From: Orbicella franksi
Lineage: Eukaryota
DNA length: 64,000 bases
NCBI GenBank assembly: GCA_964199315.1
Contig: OZ116698.1
Span: forward strand, 34,038,001-34,102,000
Reading direction: 5' to 3'
Positions 3,001 through 63,643 of the stretch are shown here, one piece after another; within the stretch, counting starts at the first letter, position 1, and each line of letters opens with the position of its first letter. Below the pieces are notes generated by a model, which had not been told where the DNA came from, ran no database searches, and saw only the letters and a list, made by a program, of their open reading frames with translations. A program made the translations under genes and the position numbers.

Positions 3001-6000
3001 TAAACTGATCCAAAATGGCAAGCGAATTTGTTTCGGGAGGTAATTCGCATGCATGTTGGTAATCTTTCGGCAAAAATTGTTATCGGAAACTATTCACACA
3101 ATCAAAGCCATGCGTTTCGTCAGTTTGTCAGCAGGTGACTGAGATGAAAGAAATTTCCATCTTTTGCGGCGAAGGAAGTTTACTTCAGTTTGGATTGAAA
3201 TGTTGAGTTAAAATTTGATTTGTTACTGTCCTAGATGTTTCTTACTTTGAAAATAAATTTCTGAGTCAAGTTGAATTGCGGGATTGTAAAATAGAAAATC
3301 ACCAGGTAGGACAGCCCAGTTGTGTATCGAGTAGTTTTTAGAGATAACGCCCGGGAAATAACGTATACTTTTCCAATACTAAATGCCAGATTTTCGGTTG
3401 TATTAAGCATCAACGAATGTCACAAAAGCTGCTTTTTAAGGAGAATATTAGCATTTTTATGTTAAAAACCATTAATACAAAGCAGGCACGTGAACTGAGG
3501 TGTGGGAAAAAAAGTGTAAATTGTCGGCCGCAGCAACCAGTCCCAGCACTTAACAATGAACTGATATGTACACACATCAACACTGCGACATCTAGCTAGC
3601 GCCTTCTATGAATGCACAAACTCCTATTCCGACGAATTAGTGCTTAATTAATATAGAAATAGAAATAATCAACTCCACCGAAAAGCCGGCGTTTTAATTT
3701 ATTTTCACATTTTCCTTCTCTACTGGGTGGAAGAAAATCTACGGTGTCGTAGATATGTTCCAGACCAACGTAGTTTTTAATAAGGAGCTCTAAACTATGT
3801 TTTTGTCGTACTTTTCTCAAGGATTTTGCGATATGATTCAAAAATAATTTGCATGTAGGGATAGAGATGTATGTTTACAAGCTTGTAACGAAAGGAATAC
3901 AACAAAAACATGATTATGGGAATTGAACAAGAAATACACCCAAAACTATTTACATAAAATTAATTTTAAGGTCAAGCACCGAAAACATTTTTATGTTCAT
4001 ATTTCTACTTTTCCGTTTATTTCCTCTTAGTATAAAAACAAACGATCAAAATTAAGATTGCGCGGGCGATATAACACAGTGGCTATGGACAGCAATTAAC
4101 ATATGCGGTCAAAAAGGGTCTTTCAAAGCCTACTGAAGCTTGATTTCCTGTGGTAAAGTGAAGCTCTTCAATCAAACAATCAGACTTAGACTCACCACAG
4201 ATGCCGGTGAAAGAGTGATGTTAATGAGTTACGCAAAGTTTGAACTCAAATAATCTGAGGCGAAGGCACAAATACGCCCATTCTGAGCCCGGAATAAGTG
4301 TTTTTCATCTAAAGTAAAATTTTTGGGATTAACAGCACAATGTACTAACCCAAGGAAAGACTGAACAAAAGCATTAAGTAGGTCAAGAGAATGCGAAACA
4401 AAATGTTTAATACGTAATAGTTCTACTTAAAACGCAATTTCTTTTGGGATCAAAATACAATGAATACAATTCTTCTTTAAGTGATTGTTAGTGTGTTAAT
4501 GAAACTGATAAACTAGTCACGAATTTATGGCAGAAATACGAGCATAGAAATAAAACTTTGACTCACAGTATATGTAAAAATGTACAATATTGTTTACCCT
4601 CAACTGAAAGCGAAATTAGTTAATAAGAGTACAAAACGAGCTCTCCAACGCTACTTCAGCGTATTTGTATTTCAATGTAAAGCTTCCGCTGACGAATACA
4701 TTGCAGTTTTCAAAAAGCTGTTGTCAAGCAATTGTTAATTATTTTTTGAGGAAGTCCGGATATTTCGAGTTGTCATTTGGTAGGCTCTGTGGAGGTCGTT
4801 CTAATAAGAAAGCATCACGTTCGGAAGCCTTCGATGTTAATCTGTTTGCTTGTTCCCAACGTGATTGGGCTTTCACCATCCTCGTCAAATAGCAGTCAAA
4901 TTAAATTCGCAACAGAAAAAATAGAAACCTGAAGAAGCCAAGAATGTAAACGGTGTTTAAAACCAAACATCACGACTGCGTGCAAATCAAACGAGGAAAA
5001 CCTACAATACCATTCGGATTTGTTTAAATTCGTATATAGCGAGTGCAAAGTAAAAATAGGCCAGTTAAAATCGACTGAGGATTGAAGAACACAGCAAAAA
5101 AACAAAGATCTTGTGGCTGAATTCACTCAGGTAAGATGTAAACCTAAAATTTACACTCCGTGAAATTTTCGTTTTCACAACCAACTACACTGAAAGAAAG
5201 TAGTGAAAACTTGTTTCTCGTCCGTGAACGGTCTAACATGAAAGCGCTTTTGGAATAAATATTTGGCCATTTTGCCACTTTTGCGATATTACTTTCATGC
5301 AGTAATCGACAGGTGATGAACACAAATCTAAACCGCGAATGGGAAACTATTAATGATTTTAATCAGATAAGAGAGAGCAACTATTTTTCGGAGCACAACA
5401 GAGTACTTTGCAATAATTTGAATTAGTATTTCAGAATCTTTTTTTTTTCTACACTGAGAAAGAAAGCTTGAGTATCTGTCTTACTGAGATCGGTACTTCA
5501 AACAGACCGATTGGCAAACACGTGCATATGAGTTTACAAACAACCCCTTCACATTGCCTTCGAAATTTTAAATATGAATCTTTACTTACATCAAATTCCT
5601 TCTCTTAACAAAGAGATATGTTGATTGCATATAACATGTCAGTTGATTGCTGATGCGATAAAAAACATCTTCAGATAAAGTTAGTTATATAGTCAACTCA
5701 TCGCTTGACAAATTGAACTGAAGAGGACACGGATACTTAAACTACAATTTGCTGTGCATTTTAAAAATTAATGATCCGAAACAGACGTATAGAATGTTGG
5801 CAATAAATTTCTTAATAAACACACCAAAATCTTAATTTTGAATATAGCAGCATTATACTTATTAAAATAGACACACAAAGTCAGATTCATATCTAAGAAA
5901 AAATGCCAGTTTGTCAAGGTGTAAAATTATATGTCTGGAGACTAATAGGTCGAATAGCCGTTGCAAACGCATTTCGCTGTTTATTTCGGTGTCCTTAACT

Positions 6001-9000
6001 CTTCGCAGCCATACTAGTTGTAGTATTTTTAAATTTAAGTGGTTTGGGGGTTTATGACCATGACACGTGTTAAACATTTCCATCTTGGTTGAGTCAAGTT
6101 ATACGTCACAAGGTGATACCCGTCGACTACCTGACAACAGGGACCAGCCACGAGTTTCCCAAGAGACATTTCCTATTTCAACGACTGCTTTCCTGTTCAT
6201 CTCTTTCACACTTAAACGCGAAAAACAGTTCCTACGCTTTTCCTATTCTTAAGGAAAGTTGCTTGGAATAAGATTCATTTTTATTTTACAAAATAGTTAG
6301 AGAAGGCCATCTGCTTCATGCAAACTCAGAAGCCAGGCGAATATTAAATTTATAATGTCTTTGACAGAAAAAGTACATGCTTTAACCATCAAATGAGATC
6401 TCTTTTTTTACCCTTGCAAATTAAACCAGATTGTTAAGTTGAAATAACATTGATTCACCACGTGCAAACGCATATCAAGGCCGGCGTGTGAATCTAGAAC
6501 ATTTTCAAAACAGACGATGAATAAAAACGGTCCGTTAAAGGCATTGTCAAAATATAAATGTTTGTCATGATTTTGGAGTCTAGTAAACACGTTTTGAATC
6601 ATATTACAAAGCTTGATTTCGTTTTCAATTTTTTTATATATTTACAGGAATTTAAAATGGCAAGATTGACTGAAAATTTATTATGGAGCCATATGTCATG
6701 ATAGTAAGAACTGAGTGCGAAAAATAAATAAAAAAAAAAAAATGCTGTGAAAATCTTTAAATAAGCTACTTCGATAACACTTTGGAAATGAAGCGATAAT
6801 TTAAAAGCGTCTGGTTTTAATACAGTAAAATTTGTTAGATTTTTTAGTAAGCACAGAACTGTTTCTTTCTATGATGCAGCTTTCATTACGTATTGATGAT
6901 TTTCATGTTTGATGTAGTGCCGGATGTAAAATCCAAAATTAGTTTCGCAGTCGCATTTCAAAGTGTTTTTCCTGAATAATTCCTGCTGTTCGGTGAGGGG
7001 AAAGAGAGTTTGAAAAACAAAACTCTTTATGCCACTGCATCACACAAAGCAAAATTTACAGAAATCAATATTTAATGAATTTTTCTGTTTCAATTTTCTG
7101 ACACAAAACCAACTGCTATCAGAGAGATTAGAAAGCGCCTGTTAATTTAAATGACTAAAACTCAAGTAAAATTGAACTGCAAAGCCCGTCGAGGGTTTTA
7201 GCTTACGGAAGAATTGTTATTTAAATCAGGTATACTTTGCGAATAAGACTAATTACAAAACGACGTTCTGAGGCCTTGTTTCTCGACTGCTGTTGATTAT
7301 TTGGCTGTTGGCTAAGTTATGTTGAGGTCGCCAAGCCCAGTTTCTTGGTTGCTGGCACAAGATGTTTAGTAACAAAATCAGTACAAAATATTCATCACTG
7401 AATTTATGGAAACTGGAGAATAAGTCGTTTAATCCAACTTGTCTGCAGGTGTTCAAGGAATCCACAAGGTAATTTTACCATCTTTATATATGGCCAAACT
7501 TCATCAGAACTGACAGCGAATTAAGTGGTGTAAATTGTGATAACTAGAAGAAAAATCTGTTGCAACATATGATATAGTGTTTAGACAACACTTATGAAAC
7601 AAATCCTATGACAAGAAAGCCTCGCTATACGAACTGTAACAACATAATGTTCATGTCTCATTGAGGGCATAAGTAATAAAATCCTAAAACAAAACATTAG
7701 ATCGATTTTCCTGAATATTTTACTTTATTTTAGATATTGTGCGAAACGATATTTCCAAGTAACTGAGATGTAAGATAGGATATTGCAGTCAGAGTATTTA
7801 AGACAGAGTTTAATGCAGCTGTTATCTGAGGTATTTAATATTTTGACTTTCTCAAGCTCGTGCTTGCACCCACACGACATTGTATCAAGTATCACTGTTA
7901 CCTCCGGACACCGTTTTGGCAGGCACTTCTTACGTACGATATAAGCTTTTCACAGAACCCGCATCACATTTTACTCCTACTTTACAAAACAGGGACCTCC
8001 CAACAACATCCAATTATTTACAGAATTAAATTCTGCCCTAGAGTGGCTGTTTAAGACAAGTTCAAACAACGACGATTTTTCGGTGAAGAAAGAACGTTTC
8101 CCAGACGCAAAATGTTAGACGTGTTCTTCAAGATGAATCCAATTCCTTTGGAAAAAAATAAAAAGACTGAAAAATCTCAGATAGCTGCCTAATACGACGA
8201 AACTTAATCCACTCGGCCGGTCGACTTGTCAGAACAAGTAACTCCAAACAACCTCTCCCCAGATAATCAACCAACAATTCGTTTTCATCGGTTGCTAGGT
8301 AACCAACAAGAGCAGCAAGAAATCGTTTCACCTCTGTAGCTGAAAATACGGTAATTATGGCAGTAAGTTCGGAAAGGAACAGAGAAAGACAGCTCGATGA
8401 CAAATTGCTTCCGTTAACTTTCATCTTTAAAATATTCACAATCCGTTAACCCAAAATAAGATACCCCTGGCGAGGGCGAAAAAAGTGTTTTCTTCGCTCT
8501 ATTACCCTGTTCAGACGCTAAACTTTGGCCAAAAATAGACCCCCGCAATTTAATCCAGTTAATGTAAATGCGATCGTTACCGACATCAAATACTGTAAAC
8601 ATAAAATGAATAAAAGTAGAATAATAAATCCATCCCTTTACCAATAATAGACTGCTAGCAGTCTCTTTCTTTTCCTAGCGTGTGACGCGAAATCAATGCA
8701 CGAATGCGAAACTGACATAAGCAGAACGACTGAGTGACGAGAAGCGCGAGCGCCTAAAGAAAAAAGGTGTTTTCCTGTCTCGCCTCATTCTCTTCTCATT
8801 TCTTTCCCTGACTAGCAAAATTTTCACTTTTCCAACTGCGCGGGGGATTTCAGGAACCAAAACCGAGTGTATTTGTCCACCAAATAAGGAATTGTGCTTT
8901 AGCAACCAGGCACAAACTTCTTATGTTCCGCACACTTTCTTTTAACTTAGTTTTGTATGCGGCTCACACTAGTCGTGAAACCTTTTCTGCACAATTTTAA

Positions 9001-48920: not shown

Positions 48921-49950
48921 GGCTCACTAAGCAAAGACGCGCCATATTTAAACGCACTTCCAACTCGCAATTTTAAATGTCAGCTAGTCGTTATTTTACT
49001 CCGATGTACAAAGTAAAGACGGGATCAGTTAAGAAAAACGTCAAACTTTTATTTCCCGTCGTTCACTGTTTTGAAGCCAGTCTCACTTAAAAAATCGCTC
49101 CTCACTTCGTATCGGTCACATGTTCCCCTCTGAAAAAGCCGGTTTGTTCCCAATTTTCGAACGCAGAAAGCTAGTGGAAAAACTTCGTAAAACTTCACAT
49201 TTTTTGGCTACAATTGTAGATATAGCATTCCTCATGAAAAGCCCGTTGTTCAAAACATTAAGTGGGACTTAGGAAAGTCAGGAAATTGTGTTTTATCAAT
49301 GCCCTGCAGGCAAATTAGAGCCTTTTCTCTCTTATTCTTGGCCATTCAAACTACATTCGCATTCAAATCTTGCCGCTTCGGTGCTCATGAATAAGTAATG
49401 ATGTCCGGCCATTCTACGCGATGTACCAGTTTACCTATTTTTAGCCAATTACGATTCAAAGGTAGCCTTTTACTTTTGCGTGAGTTTTATTTTCGTTATG
49501 TCTTATTATCGATAAAGGTCCACAAATAATTTATTCGACGAAAGTTATCCCGTAAAAAGGAAATGTGTTCATATTATTCATCTGCTTAATTGCGAAAAGA
49601 CAAATACAAGGTGGTGACAGTTATCATGATGACTGAAACTTTGTACTTTACTTGGTCTTTGAATGTGCCCCGTGGAAAGTCGGAAAATCTTCTCATGGGA
49701 AGGTTTTTACTCAGCAAAGTAAGAAAAGTTTAATTTTGCTCGATGTTCTCAAATTCTAACGTAACAAGAGTTAGCTGACGCCATTTGAGGAAAGTAGAAA
49801 ATAAAGCATGTAACAGTTTCCTCTCTAATAAAACGTGCAATAAACACCGACAGAAAAAAACCATTTACCGTACTTTTATATTACACTGAAAAGTGACAAA
49901 ACCTATGTTTGAGATTATAAGGCTTCACGGGCATGTTTAGGTTACCACAC

Positions 49951-52900
49951 CTTCCTTCTTCGTCTTCTATCATCCTTCTGTAATCTTTAATATCCGAGTC
50001 CAGCGCTTTCTTCACTTCGGGCATCAGTTCTTCATCGTATTCATGGTTGGTTAGAATCCACTGGTTGCGTTCTTTGATGACAGCATCTCTCTGAGCGATG
50101 ATTTCAGCAGACCTCCTGTTGTCGGCTACTCGCAGTTTTTCTAAGTCTTCAATTTTCAGTAACAAGCTTGCATTCTGAGATAATCAATAATGAATTTTTA
50201 CATTTTTATCTCTAAATACACTCTTTTTCTGTAAGAATACTGTTTTTTCGGCCCAGGCTGAATAGTAATAAAAATTGGACCATGTCAACAAAACGTCAAA
50301 TTATCTGTTCTATCATGACTTTCATAGCGTTGAATCCATTTTTGAGCCAGATTGCAGTAATATGACACACAGAACTTCTTGCAGAAATGTTATTAGATCG
50401 AAGATACAGCTAGGGCTGTTTTTTCTTGTATTTTGGCTGGTTTTCCCGTTTGGAGAAGGAATAATTTTTACACGGTTTAGTTAAAAACACATAATTGTAT
50501 TGTATTTACAAATTTTCAACACAAAAAATTATATTCTTTTCAAAATCTCAGTCTCTGGTTTATTCTCAAAATATTCTTAAAATTTCGCAAATTTTAGCCT
50601 CGATATTTTTAAAAAATGTATTCTTAAAAAAGGAAAAAGAGTGCAAGCAACGAGAGACATGTACGTAGGGATTTATTTTCTCACTACAGCAAACAAAGTG
50701 TAAATGATTTATTTCCAGTTTACCTTAGACTCCCACTGGCCTATCTGTGACTTGAGATTTTCGATAGCAATGCTCAAATGTCTGTTTTCTTCTCGGGCAT
50801 TTGACAACTCTTCCCAATCTTTTGAGTACATCTGCTGCAGCTCGTCACACTGAAAACGTAAAAGTGCAGGACCCGCCAGTTTATGTTCAAATATCTAGTC
50901 CAAAGGTCGAAGCTGGGTGATACGGGAAACATTTTCTTTTAATTAAGTAGATGTGTATCATGCATTGCTGCATTACAAGTTGAAGAGTACTACCTCTGAT
51001 GTGAGTTGCAAAATCATACTGCGCAAAAAAGACAAGGGTTTAACTTTCAGCAGCATGTTGCTGCAACTTGCAACAAGGGTACAAAACGCGTAAAAACGTT
51101 TTACCACTCACAATGCAACAATGTTGCACTGCAAGTTGCAAGGACAGTTTTGACCGTATTACACCGCATTAGTGTTGTGTTTGCTGTTATTTATTTATTT
51201 ATTTATTTATTTATTTTTTGCTTAATTTAGTCATTTCAAGTTGACAATGAGGAAAGTGATTTGAGTCACCCGAAAATGCAGTAAAACCCTTTCTGCGGAA
51301 ACTAGTCCCTCTTCAGAGCATATAAAAGCATTGCTTATGACACAAAGGCATTGCCAATAGTATAAAAACAACATTCTGGTCAAAGATCTTCAAAAGCGGA
51401 AACTAAATTATTAACTACTTATTGACCTCGATCGTTTGGTCTTTATGGGAAATCTCAAACCCAGACCTTGCCCTATTGACCTCGCTATCGCTCGGTCAAT
51501 ACGGCAAGGTCGAGGTTTGAGATTTTCCCGTAAGACCGAACGATCGACGTCAATAAGTTGGCTTTTTGCTTTGTTTTTGCAGGCTCGTGATAAGTCCGTC
51601 GGCATTACGGGAGAGTAATGTCTTAGGATGAGCCAATCAGAGCAAGCGTTATATCGGTTCCGAACACAAGCCATGTAATAAATTTCTATATTACCTTGGA
51701 CTGCCACTGGCTCAGATCTAATCTGAGATTTTCGACATTTATGGACCAAGTTCTTTTCTCTTCTCGAACAGTTGTCAACTCTGCCACAGCTAGTAAAGAC
51801 TTCTGCTGCAACTCATCATACTGAAAGCAATATTGATACAGGAACCATCTCTAAAGAGTCATTACCAGCTAACGTTCCGATAGCCTGTTCCAGGCTCTTG
51901 GTCAGTGGTGACGATCGAAAAAGCCGGCGGGCGACGAGCGGGAACAGTCCCAGGCCCTGCTCGTCGTCCGCCCGCTTTTTCGATCGTCCCCACTGACCGA
52001 GAGCCTTGAACAGGCTAAAGTTTTGAGCCTAGCAAAGGATAATGTTTGAATGATGCTTATTTCGCGTTTTTACTTGGGTTTTCAACCAGACTGCGAAACA
52101 AAAGAGATCACGTAACCATCATTAGTGTCTCTGTAAACGAATACATCCCCATTGAATAAAATAATCAATCAATCAATCAATCAATGAATAGGTAAATAAA
52201 TGAATAAATAATAAATAAATAAATAAATAAATATCTTAATTGACCACTCCCCCAATGGGGCTTTTCAGGGCCAATGAAACCAAATGATGAAACAAATAAT
52301 GCAAATGAACATAACATAGTTAAAAATCCCAACTGGCGGGAGGCAGACCAGTTGGCTATTTACAAGCATGACAGAGGAGCTGAACTAGGGTCTACCGAGA
52401 AACAACTCCAGCTAATGTGAAGGTGAATTAATCAACATGACACGAGCGTGGGACAAAGAAAAATTCTGAGTCCCCGACAGGAATCGAACCCATGACCTCC
52501 CGAACACCGGGCGGGCGCTCTATCCACTGAGCTACGAGAACTCATGGAGAGCAAGGTCATTTAACTGAGTTCATATATGACAGGTGTCCTGCATACTGCT
52601 AGGATCAACGCTATCGAATTCATCGTGAGTAGTGATAAGTTAATAAAGATGGTGAATTTTAAGCTCGGTAAAGAAATGTGAAGGTAAATTAATCAACATG
52701 ACACGAGCGTGGGACAAAGAAAAATTCTGAGTCCCCGACAGGAATCGAACCCATGACCTCCCGAACACCGGGCGGGCGCTCTATCCACTGAGCTACGAGA
52801 ACTCATGGAGAGCAAGGTCATTTAACTGAGTTCATATATGACAGGTGTCCTGCATACTGCTAGGATCAACGCTATCGAATTCATCGTGAGTAGTGATAAG

Positions 52901-55900
52901 TTAATAAAGATGGTGAATTTTAAGCTCGGTAAAGAAATGTGAAGGTAAATTAATCAACATGACACGAGCGTGGGACAAAGAAAAATTCTGAGTCCCCGAC
53001 AGGAATCGAACCCATGACCTCCCGAACACCGGGCGGGCGCTCTATCCACTGAGCTACGAGAACTCACGGAGAGCAAGGTCATTTAACTGAGTTCATATAT
53101 GACAGGTGTCCTGCATACTGCTAGGATCAACGCTATCGAATTCATCGTGATTAGTGATAAGTTAATAAAGATGGTGAATTTTAAGCTCGGTAAAGAAATG
53201 TGAAGGTAAATTAATCAACATGACACGAGCGTGGGACAAAGAAAAATTCTGAGTCCCCGACAGGAATCGAACCCATGACCTCCCGAACACCGGGCGGGCG
53301 CTCTATCCACTAAGCTACGAGAACTCATGGAGAGCATTTAACTGAGTTCATATATGACAGGTGTCCTGCATACTGCTAGGATCAACGCTATCGGTGTTCG
53401 GGAGGTCATGGGTTCGATTCCTGTCGGGGACTCAGGATTTTTCTTTGTCCCGCGCTCGTGTCATGTTGATTAATTCACCTTCACATTTCATTACCGAGCT
53501 TAAAATTCACCATCTTTATTAACTTATCACTACTCACGATGAATTCGATAGCGTTGATTAATTCACCTTCACATTTCATTACCGAGCTTAAAATTCACCA
53601 TCTTTATTAACTTATCACAACTCCAGCTAAGTGGTCAGAGTGGGACTTAAACCCGCGACCTCCGGATTTCAAGTCCGGCGCCCTAACCACTCGGCCACGC
53701 TGCCTCCACGAAATAAATGGCTTTATTTAAGTGTCAAATGTATTTAACCCTACTGTGCTATAAGTGAGGACACTGAAAATAAACAGCCAAATATTGCACA
53801 TAGAACGTAAACTATTAAGAATCCCAACTGGGGGAAGCCTCCCACGCAGACGCTCTTAGGGCTCGTCACGCGTTCCTTCCCCACGTGGGGAAGGAATTGG
53901 GAAATTTCGGAAACCAGTGGTGAGAGAGAATACCTTGAGAGGGGATTACGTTGGGTATACAAGGCCTTCTTAGGGAATAAACTCTTAATCCTCTCTTAAT
54001 TTCTCGGTGTTTGGAACCGCAGAAGATATTCCCTTCATCTTTCAAGAATAAGGCGCAGAGGTCAATGTCTGTATTAGATGAGAGGCTTACGAAATCCGGT
54101 TTTTTGGAATCAAATTAAGAAGTGAATTTTTGTCCGTAAAAGAAAGGTGTCCGTAAGGAGAGGTTGCACTGTATTTCTCTCTACCTTTGAATTGTGACGT
54201 GTCTCAAGTTCGTTCCTCAGTTCTTGCAGCTGTTGGGCCAACATTTCTTCATAACGTGTCTTCATTTTCGATTCAACTTCAAAGCGCTTTGCCTCTGCGA
54301 TTCGTAACTGGCCGCGGATCCCAACTATATCCTAAAGAGAAAAGATTGCAATACATGCACAGCGAGCGAAAAAAATAGGTCAGAAGCGCGGCGAGAGAAG
54401 GCGAAAAAAGTTCTTTCGCTTTCGCTCGCGCGCGTCTCCCCTATTTTTTTCGCTCGCCGTTTTTCGCGCTGCGCCCCAACTAACTGAACGCCTGGAAGAG
54501 ACTAATGGTCAGTGCGTTAAATTCCGGATCGAGCGGTCCGGGTTCGAGCGCTGGCTGGGGTCATTGGGTTGTGTTCTTGAGCGGGCCGATACTTTATTCT
54601 CGCAGTGCCTTACGGTGCTACGGTGCCTCTCTCCACCCAGGTGTACAATTAGTATCCCAAGAGGCAGGCAAGAGATAATAAGCACTCAATGACTGGCCCC
54701 AAGGAAAACACTGAGGTTTGTTTCCCCGAGACCCTTGATGTTTAATAATTACACGCAACATCCAGGAGGGGAGTAGAAATGCTCCTAGTCTCTTAACGCC
54801 AAAATTTAATCTTAAGTACAAGATTAATGGATCTAAACGGAACGTGTTTTAAATCTGAACAAGTTCTGATGTGAGAAAATTGAAATATGTTTTCTAACAG
54901 CTTGCGCAGGTTAAAGCGTCATTTCAAAACTACATGTTTTTGTCGATAGTTAAAACCCATTACCTTTTCGTATGTTTCCTTCATAGAAACCAGTTCTGTT
55001 TCCTTGGACAGTAATTTGCTTTCAAGGTCCATCTTTAAGAGGGTCTCTTGTTCAAGGTCGAATTTAGTTACTTCCAAGGCGTCCTTCAGTTCTTGGCGCT
55101 CTTTCATTAGCTCCAGTATTTTAACTTCTAAGTTCTTAATTTCCTGATTTCTTGCCACTAGCTGTCCTTCTTTTTCAGAAAGTTGCCACTGAGCAGTTTT
55201 CAAGGCATCTTCAGTCACCTTGTGCGCTTCGATCTGTTTATCAAGCCTTTGAGGTGACAAGAAAGTTTAGTAGCCGCCTATTAGCAAGTATTAATTGTCA
55301 ATACAATTATAAAAACAATCCGTAAGTCTCGTACAGTGCTGCTAGCGAATAAGCTGGACGTGATGGAGTAGGCACATTAACTTCGCATAATGTGGCAAGT
55401 CATTGCAATTAAAATACAAGTTCTGCTAAATTATGCTACTGTTATTAGGTATAGAATACGCGGGCTCGTCTGTTTGTTAAATACAGAGTCGAAGGCTAAA
55501 ACAGTGAACTCAGAAATGAAGTAATAAATTCCATGGTAAATTTAATGGATATCTGAATTCATTTATTGCTTCAAAAATAAACTTTCCCGTCTGTCCTGAA
55601 ATGAAGATTTCGATATTCAAAACGATCTATAAGCGAAAGAGTTCAGCCAATCAGCAAGCACTTAAATTTATGCTTATGCCAACCATGTCTTCACTGGATA
55701 GAACACCGAGAAGAACGCTTATGCTTATGTCGTGGCCGTCCCCACTAGCACATAAGCTTCTCATGCCTGTGCTTCTGCTTGCGTCGCAAGTGAGGACCGG
55801 GCTTCAACCGACGGTTATGCACCTAACAGTTTGATCTCATATCTGATTGGTAGCTATCCAATTAACATGTCAAAGCCATTACAAAGAGTCCACGGTTTTC

Positions 55901-56657
55901 TGGTTCGCACAATAATGCGTGAGTGCATGTCAATTCCTTGCGGTTTGATCCCGCATTTGATTGGCAGCTAGGCAGTTAGACATGCCTAACATAGTAATGG
56001 CAACACAGAAGGGAAGCTAAACCCTTTCGCGACGTCTTGCACAGTAGTACACAATAGTCCAGTTTTGAAACACCTTAGAGTACAGCTACGATAAATTTTT
56101 GCGGGCTTATCGCCGATTGCCACAAACTAGGAAATAGAACTCATCGTGGAATATTTTTACAACTTGGAGCGAGAAAGAAATTCTTATCACTACACACAAT
56201 AAAATGTACTTGTCAAGAGAACTGCTGTGTTGTGCATTAGGATGACACCCAGTCTGTTACTATAAAACACAAGAAAAGTGTGTAAAAGACATAATATTAC
56301 TTACTTCTTCTTGTATTCATCAGCCAGTGCCGCGTTTTTCCTGTTCTCGGTATGAAGGCGGGCTCTCTCTCTTAAAATCTCGTCATACAGTCGATTTGCA
56401 TCCTCTAGCCTCGATTCAAACTGCTTAATCTCCTTTTCTTTGCTCATCTTCAATACAGTGATCTCGGCTATCAACTTCTTCTTCTCGTCTGTCAGGTGGC
56501 TGTTCGAATCCTCCAAAGTTTTGACTTTTTTAATGTAAACGTCAAGGCGTTCATTCAACTGTTTAAGTTCATCTTCTTTCTTCTCTAGAAAGTAACGAAG
56601 AGCTTTCTTCGTCGGGGATATAATGGGTGGAAGGTCAATGGGAGGTAAACTCGTCAT
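49951..56657 (-). CDS. Divergent lamin-type intermediate-filament paralog: head and rod exons
   Basis: Exons: 56657-56305 (353 nt; MTSLPPIDLPPIISPTK...KEDELKQLNERLDVYIKKVKTLE), 55246-54964 (283 nt), 54331-54185 (147 nt), 51820-51695 (126 nt), 50849-50724 (126 nt), 50174-49951 (224 nt; ...KALDSDIKDYRRMIEDEEGR). All GT-AG and in frame. Phases and sizes follow the lamin pattern (human LMNA exons 356, 157+126, 171, 126, 221 nt, recalled). Confidence 0.9.
51885..52015. mobile_element. Short palindromic MITE (TAGCCTG...CAGGCTA)
   Basis: Near-perfect hairpin. The same terminus type occurs at about 27905-28197 and 38155-38310. Confidence 0.7.
52416..53616 (-). repeat. Tandem array of 261-bp tRNA-like units with an inverted terminal segment, inserted into a SINE
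   Basis: Three full units and one partial unit at a 261-bp period. tRNA-like segments at 52468-52543, 52729-52804, 52990-53065 and 53251-53326. Inverted partial copy at 53393-53616. Direct repeat ACAACTCCAGCTAA at 52402-52415 and 53617-53630. The host tRNA-SINE head is at about 53630-53708. Confidence 0.9.
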
Positions 56658-61600: not shown

Positions 61601-63643
61601 TCCTTGAACTGAATTTTATTCTTTTAATGTGTTGTACAAACATTTTATTTTAAACTTGACTCATTAGCTACAAGCTAGGAGCCTAACAAGTTCCAGGTCC
61701 TAGAGTATAAATAAAGCATGTAATAAAACTGTATGCATGTATGTATGAAAGTGAGAAAGAAAACTCCGTCCAGCCTTGAAAAAATATCCATCAATAGATA
61801 ACATGGCCAGTACAGCAAGTCCTTTGGTTAGCAAAATCAGTGATTTCCCGCAGAAAAAAAACTGTCATTTGAATAATTAATTGCTTGCTGTAAGCTCGCT
61901 GTGCAAATTATTTTGTCTCCAATCAACCAGTGGTTTATACCTAACTACAATGACAATATGGATGTTTTACTTCATGAGTCATTCACAGGTGTCAAGTTGG
62001 CAAAGTAATAAGGTTTGTGCCTGAGGATCAGAAATTAGCGGGCTTAGGCTGGTGGTTTGAATCCTATTGTGGACTTTTTTTTTTGAGCTTCTTTTTTGCG
62101 GATGGCTTGTATTTATATAGGTACTGGAAAATAAAAATGTTCAAGCCATAAAGCAATGTAATTACAACAGAAAATGAGACAGTATGGAAATTTGAAACAT
62201 TTGTGGAAGAAAAATGCTTCTCAAGCGCAAAAGGAAGAGTTAAAAGCCACTGTCAAAGTGTTCGACGGATAGAATTATACACCGCCCTTTGTTTCATACC
62301 AAATAGCCTTTAATTTGGGAGTGCTTGTTCGAATCTAAACACGAAAGATCAGTTCATCACTTTGGCAGCCTTCTGACCCATCGACTGACAGGGACCGTCG
62401 ATGCTCTGATTACATGAACACTATCTGGGGATTATGTGTGTATGAACGCACTCTGATTGGCTTTGGAAACTATTCGAGGAATAAGGTTACCTGGAGGAGC
62501 TACAAAAACTATCTGGAGATTAGAGTTACAGATGGACTTACTTACAGAGATGATGACATTAGTGCTATGCCTTTTTGAGGCCGGTGGCCACAAAAACTCA
62601 CATTTCTTGTTACAAAATACATGTACATGTAGGCGCAATACAAAAATCAATGGATTACCGGTAATTCATGATTCCTTAGAGAACAAAATCAAGTCAAAAG
62701 AAAGATTTATAAAGGGTGCAGGTAACCAAAAATGGCTAATGTTTCTATTACTTGAGAAAAACTTTAACTGCTAATTCAACCTTCCTTGCCTTTTCAGTGC
62801 TTACTTTAAAAGCAGAAATCTGAGGGCTCCCTTTATGGCATCAATTAAGTTGTCAAAGTCATCAAAAGTTGATTAAACACAATTTAGCAAGTGAAAATTT
62901 GTTTTGTTTCACTGACTCTCAAACATCAGAGGACTTACTGTGACATAAGATCCAGTTTTCAAAACATATTTAGGAGTGAACTTATAAATGGCCGGTGGTT
63001 CACCATCAATGGATCTTTCTACACTCCATCCACCAAGAGGAAAATCCTGAACAAAACAAACAAAATTACACGGTTGCTATAAATAATCACAGGTTAAAAA
63101 AGAAATATCCAGACACCTCATCCAGCCTGAAATAAAGTTTTTTAAATCACGTCATACCAGGAATGCACAATGGACCAAAATTACGTCTTTCCTGATAGTG
63201 TCTCAAAACTCTTACTTTTGGAAGAACATTATTTTTAAGATCATATGACTTCCTCAGTAAAGCATGTGATAAACACAAAGTGCAAGACACTGCCTACTTT
63301 TATCCAAACAGTTCTTACCCCTCTTGTCAATAGTTTAGACTAAATGTTTACTTTTCCAGGTCTGGAAATCTACCAGTATTCAGAAACTTTTGTTGACAAC
63401 TCCAGACTTTGTAAAAATACTACACAGAAAAACAAGACACACTGTAGATTACTTACTTTAGCACCACTGTTGAAAAGCTTCACATAAGTGCCATCAGCGC
63501 TTGCCTCCTTAATCTGAATATAACCTTGGTTCGAATATTTAGTTCCTATTGTTTCTTCTTCTGTGCGTATACGTTTGGTAGAACGTCTACCAGATTTAGC
63601 AGAAGCTCCAAACACTGGTGATGCTGGGGGAGTGATGTTCAAC
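58658..63643 (-). CDS. Lam: Canonical B-type nuclear lamin, 3' half (rod exons lie beyond the right edge of the window)
   Basis: Exons: 63643-63457 (phase-2 start after the rod-end Arg; LNITPPASP...GRRSTKRIR NLS...GYIQIKEASADGTYVKLFNSGAK), 63046-62939 (108 nt, DFPLGGW...), 60838-60719 (120 nt, IWASQGGG...), 59400-59314 (87 nt), 58690-58658 (GETSKGCLIQ*, CaaX). The 108 and 120 nt LTD exons equal LMNA exons 8 and 9 (recalled). Confidence 0.93.

Follow-up and report, generated by a model that had tools for sequence, protein, structure and literature searches.

A lamin paralogue of the coral Orbicella franksi carries two adjacent copies of a 126-nt exon (hereafter exons A and B) in the part of the gene that encodes coil 2 of the rod, whereas the neighbouring canonical lamin possesses only one. 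Both copies are conserved and subject to purifying selection, both are present in polyA RNA, and sequencing reads join exon B to the exon that follows it. In the reading which we favour, with some confidence though short of assurance, exons A and B are included in series, leading to a rod 42 residues longer than that of the canonical lamin. A lamin-type protein with a coil 2 exactly six heptads longer would then, with about the same degree of confidence, have existed since before the sampled corals diverged.

Unless otherwise stated, coordinates refer to the window, i.e. the whole stretch of 64,000 nt analysed here (assembly GCA_964199315.1, contig OZ116698.1, positions 34,038,001 to 34,102,000). 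The gene is encoded on the minus strand, in parts of the window that are free of N runs, and all six exons of the model (1, 2, 3, A, B and 6) have GT-AG borders. Exon 1 (56657-56305) includes the start codon, a short head and coil 1A with a one-heptad insert; exon 2 (55246-54964, 283 nt) encodes coil 1B, and exon 3 (54331-54185, 147 nt) is the constitutive exon upstream of the pair. The upstream copy, exon A (51820-51695), and the downstream copy, exon B (50849-50724), are separated by an intron of 845 nt (50850-51694), in which a palindromic MITE-like insert is found in some species only. The model ends with exon 6 (50174-49951, 224 nt), the downstream constitutive exon, which encodes the end of coil 2. 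Joined together, the six exons form an open head and rod of 419 residues, which opens with the customary start motif of coil 1A and closes with a degenerate rod-end motif.

Each of the two copies encodes 42 residues, i.e. six heptads, of which 20 are identical between A and B and 22 differ. Phase 0 is shared by the starts of exons 3, A, B and 6 and by the ends of A and B, and the acceptor (tttcag) and donor (AAG/gtaa) are alike on the two copies. The first residue of each exon occupies an 'a' position, and the a/d heptad register runs uninterrupted from A through B into exon 6. These results reproduce exactly what had been proposed from the letters of the window (hereafter the sequence-only reading), namely the two translations with their 20/42 identity, and also bear out the exon lengths, the 0-0 phases, the good splice sites and the length of the intron. 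The Filament profile (PF00038) matches exon 1 at positions 4-88 (E 3e-8) and exon 6 at positions 241-311 (E 8e-5), these single-exon scores falling short of the cut-off set for whole proteins, as is normal for fragments; exons A and B are too short for a Pfam match alone, and their slot lies directly before profile position 241, where exon 6 begins. Judged by its sequence, this gene is a remodelled lamin paralogue, with exons A and B in its coil-2 part.

When exon A was searched in six frames against the entire 497-Mb genome, three places only were retrieved, namely A itself, exon B (E 0.005) and an exon of the canonical lamin (E 3e-6), and the similarity of A to B is, on this comparison, beyond chance. 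The same search of the 497-Mb genome returned no processed retrocopy in which a splice pattern would have been recorded. The equivalent exon of the canonical lamin (G000:C1:34105140-34105265) lies 15 kb upstream, just past the end of the window; it is 57% identical to A and 52% identical to B, and 15 positions are common to A, B and this parent exon. The exons of the canonical lamin (G000:C1:34104400-34108700) match exons 1, 2, 3 and 6 of the paralogue in the same order, exon 2 being aligned without gaps over 94/94 residues, and one single 126-nt exon is located between the equivalents of exons 3 and 6. Because the canonical lamin displays this single exon at the position of A and B, the pair arose when one exon was duplicated in tandem within a lamin paralogue that adjoins its parent. 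The tandem duplication of a 126-nt coil-2 exon, as claimed in the sequence-only reading, is thus confirmed, the parent exon being present once in the neighbouring canonical gene. The slot of A and B is presumably that of the 126-nt exon 5 of vertebrate LMNA. The two genes are head-to-tail neighbours, and a lamin-tail exon of the canonical lamin is still visible within the window (63370-63642, minus strand), the rest of that gene being past the window end.

Orthologous genomic contigs were gathered via protein fragments and a metagenome scan. Both copies were retrieved, in the same order, from nine distinct coral sources (the window, L006, L008-10, L011-14, L018, L020, L021-23, L024, which is from the same source as L005, and L026), and in all nine each copy is 126 nt long and open, with intact AG/GT borders. 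Orthologues of exon A, with AG/GT kept, come from the eight other coral sources and from one paralogue. An absence of exon A from L005 was considered and rejected, as this contig is too short and, in a longer contig from that source, the exon is located 1.9 kb upstream. When the 42-residue exons are placed in a tree, the A copies and the B copies form two clades (support of 99-100 and 92-99, respectively) whose internal topologies mirror one another, and the canonical exons form a third group with far shorter branches. In L026, the most distant source, the second copy is of the B type and the first is still canonical-like. Since this source already has a B-type second copy, the duplication predates every lineage sampled; from the tree, exon A acquired its special character later than the duplication itself.

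The codon model yielded omega values of 0.60 (A), 0.47 (B) and, when the two exons are taken together, 0.53 (p 0.009 versus 1), to be compared with 0.50 for the constitutive exon 6; tested against neutrality, exon A alone gives p 0.14. By these estimates the whole rod is fast-evolving, and neither copy is an outlier. No indel was detected in either exon among eight intact orthologues, versus 8-12 events per pair in the A-B intron, the length of which is 459-2529 nt in the other corals. Nucleotide identity between sources is 82-95% for the exons and 79-85% for the A-B intron. Taken together, these comparisons indicate that both copies are working coding exons under purifying selection, and that both are real exons seems to us close to certain.

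Some irregular copies were also noted among these contigs. L026 contains a third copy (L026:5983-6300 and 6854-6979), which matches the intact B exon without a single difference over the acceptor and the first 83 nt; an insertion of ~200 nt interrupts the exon, and ~12 nt of it are missing. This third copy reflects either a tandem duplication of very recent date or an artefact of the assembly. In the same source, the donor of exon 3 is GC (AAG/gcaagg, L026:3449) instead of GT. A second copy of the remodelled gene exists in one coral source (L007:4391-7523), on the contig of L009 and ~115 kb away. Its exon B reaches 138 nt, from a four-residue LKLQ repeat, no exons 1-3 were seen in the 4.4 kb upstream, and the copy has reverse-transcriptase ORFs on its flanks. 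Given that its pairwise dN/dS to the window exceeds 1, this copy is probably a decaying partial duplicate.

The sequencing runs in which this stretch occurs bear coral labels, and four RNA runs were placed on 49800-55300. The gene is weakly expressed in these four runs and is covered only by the polyA run X24 and the X8 contigs. In X24, the bin-corrected depth is ~6 on exon 2, ~7 on exon 3, ~4 on A, ~6 on B and ~8 on exon 6, and is zero in the intron bins 50904-51455 (bins 50904-51271 being at zero in all raw RNA runs). The X8 contigs have a depth of 4.4 on A, 5.6 on B and exon 6, and 4.8 on exon 3. The B-to-exon-6 junction was observed in seven X24 reads, from seven start points, and in one X8 contig. 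As full use of B predicts five to six such reads, the seven counted account for all of the exon-6 depth, while A is also covered, at about half to full depth. No joint involving exon A, either A-to-B or A-to-exon-6, is among the best 15 of the 19 joints listed for 49800-55300, and one X8 contig of 189 nt passes through exon A and extends nine letters beyond its donor, these letters being incompatible with the intron sequence.

Within the A-B intron (51440-51620) and just upstream of exon A (51900-52000), palindromic MITE-like elements were identified, which the window shares with L011 and which L006 and L008 lack; reads connecting opposite strands were seen at 51474/51507. The repeats of intron 3 (52192-53850 and 54400-54583) display a very high RNA and contig depth, of up to ~4000 in X8, with many loose ends and foreign joints, and the corresponding reads probably derive from transposon copies elsewhere in the genome. 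A second run search gave shares of 0.26-0.69 in PolyA libraries, which are uninformative since intron and repeat words are counted in.

Among 1.84 billion representative proteins, an A+B+C profile matched nothing but short ORF fragments predicted from genomic DNA, with no full-length or spliced protein among the matches. Word-index protein searches with exon A and exon B returned zero candidates, and that with exon 6 returned 11 matches, all of them genomic ORFs ending in intron-coded residues; the metagenome scan with the B-type alignment added three contigs, all genomic. A transcript-derived protein was found in none of the libraries searched, and since these hold genomic ORF fragments only, they offer no annotated product for comparison. 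Solved structures searched with a 42-column profile gave no lamin match.

Two outcomes had been left side by side by the sequence-only reading, a rod extended by six heptads in register or a pair of mutually exclusive exons, and between the two the evidence leans to the extension. If A and B were mutually exclusive, each mRNA would contain one of them, the length of the rod would be unchanged, and the isoforms would differ at 22 of 42 coil-2 residues. We regard this outcome as rather unlikely, even though the architecture of the pair recalls it: A and B are adjacent, homologous, and of the same length and phase, which is the classic signature of mutually exclusive exons and as such counts against inclusion in series. 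Likewise, both copies are conserved and retain the core motif of the parent exon, and the 15 parent-exon positions kept by both are what would be expected of alternative exons filling the same slot. The arrangement in L026, with a canonical-like first copy and a B-type second one, matches an ancestral exon to which a new alternative was added, and the four joints not seen beyond the best 15 of 19 could hold the exon 3-to-B and A-to-exon-6 junctions.

A precedent for such a pair also exists in another coiled-coil protein. Exons 2 and 3 of alpha-tropomyosin are tandem, homologous and mutually exclusive, and each of them is 126 nt long and encodes 42 residues of a two-stranded coiled coil. Their exclusivity results from a branch point located too near the upstream donor. 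In contrast, the A-B intron is 459-2529 nt long in the other corals, leaving no steric block, and an ordinary pyrimidine tract is found beside the acceptor of exon B. Two other usual bases for exclusive use do not apply to the coral gene either: all sites are of the U2-type GT-AG class with strong pyrimidine tracts, and double inclusion keeps the frame (126 being a multiple of 3) and would thus entail no decay. The alignments of the A-B and B-exon-6 introns display general similarity only, a non-exhaustive search revealing no conserved selector- or docking-like block.

The read depths also argue against exclusive use. In X24, the summed depth of A and B is ~10.5, versus 6-8 on the flanking exons, and the seven B-to-exon-6 reads already equal the full usage of B although A is still covered. 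Our own arithmetic on these read counts, which are small and come from one sample (X24) plus one contig set (X8), favours the inclusion of both exons over exclusive use by roughly 3-6 to 1 in likelihood. The X24 and X8 depths thus favour joint inclusion in a manner that is suggestive, not decisive.

Inclusion in series is the reading that we retain as the best: the B-to-exon-6 reads fill the depth of exon 6 and yet A is covered too; the intron length, the frame and the type of splice sites show no enforced exclusivity; and the heptad register spans both exons in a paralogue in which rod length is changed elsewhere. The tandem duplication of one 126-nt coil-2 exon preceded the divergence of the sampled corals and, under this scheme, splicing would most likely proceed from exon 3 to A, B and exon 6 in one mRNA. 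The predicted product would have a coil 2 longer than that of the canonical lamin by 42 residues (six heptads, ~6 nm), with an unbroken a/d register. The A-to-B junction is one that we infer, and the longer rod consequently stands on the same footing.

Some departure from systematic inclusion can also be envisaged, as the depth of A is below that of B and of the flanking exons, so that some skipping of A is possible. In this case A and B would be together in the main mRNA, and certain tissues or stages would omit one of the two, A more probably than B, as a cassette exon. Such mixed use would agree with the X24 depths (~4 on A versus ~6 on B and 6-8 on the flanks), and dropping either exon would preserve both the reading frame and the heptad register. 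However, the gap in depth is within Poisson noise (about 8 versus 12 reads) and no skipping junction is among the best 15 of the 19 joints listed, making this an improbable refinement of inclusion in series. The sequence-only reading had further envisaged several isoforms arising from the combination of the two exons with two tails, an idea which has no support so far.

Finally, that one copy is a dead, never-used pseudo-exon is hardly credible: the only point in its favour is that omega, tested for A by itself, gives the weaker result (0.60, p 0.14), against nine sources in which both copies are open, exactly 126 nt long and bordered by intact splice sites, no exon indel where the intron rate predicts several, polyA RNA that covers both exons and not the intron, and, for contrast, a truly dead copy, the extra B of L026, which is broken by an insertion. 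The scenario against which the original proposal was set, one copy never being included and drifting neutrally, is likewise excluded by the conservation in nine sources and by the presence of both copies in polyA RNA.

The pair of coil-2 exons is not the only change of length in this rod. Compared with its canonical neighbour, coil 1A of the paralogue has gained seven residues (one heptad), and 14 (two heptads) in L018 and L026. This insert (within 56305-56657 of the window, L018:621-992 and L026:3-347) looks like a local repeat of an LTAE-type heptad. Linker L1 is four residues shorter than in the canonical lamin. Exon 3 measures 147 nt in the window and in all orthologues, versus 180 nt in the canonical gene (L016, about 5750-5929), which amounts to 11 residues lost close to where coil 2 begins. 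The tight conservation of rod length, on which the sequence-only reading had relied, thus fails for this paralogue, since coil 1A (+7 or +14), linker L1 (-4) and exon 3 (-11) all depart from it.

The canonical coral lamin and the paralogue share the size of the duplicated exon, its phase and its position in coil 2, before the rod-ending exon; they differ in that the former has one copy and the latter two, in addition to an altered coil 1A, linker L1 and exon 3 length. Tandem exon duplication is a common process, the outcome of which is either alternative or constitutive exons. Lamins and invertebrate intermediate filament proteins are distinguished from vertebrate cytoplasmic ones by a 42-residue (six-heptad) difference in coil 1B, which is fixed between the classes. 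This difference and the A/B change are both exactly six heptads in size; however, the former separates protein classes, whereas the latter concerns coil 2, arises via exon duplication and is putative at the protein level.

Nematocilin, the tardigrade cytotardin and isomin are, like the coral paralogue, duplicates of lamins that depart from the canonical architecture (PMC4448529, PMC4829535, PMC3065449). Unlike these three, the coral paralogue is young and in tandem with its parent. Term searches of a survey of lamin evolution (PMC4448529) revealed no mention of a duplication or extension in coil 2, nor did the titles and abstracts retrieved from the literature, among them those on lamin-derived cytoplasmic filaments (PMC4829535, PMC3065449). 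Should A and B be mutually exclusive after all, the paralogue would still represent, so far as the searched portion of the literature shows, the first lamin with alternative coil-2 segments, a result of use as well, if less surprising than a longer rod.

In models of intermediate filament assembly, the length of the rod and the overlaps between dimers are taken as fixed. If exons A and B are indeed translated in series, the 42 additional residues of coil 2 would reveal which of these overlaps tolerate a shift of six heptads, and a longer axial repeat would be predicted, with no in-register co-assembly with the canonical lamin. The paralogue, in which coil 1A has also changed by whole heptads, would then constitute an evolutionary experiment in the rod length and axial repeat of intermediate filaments.
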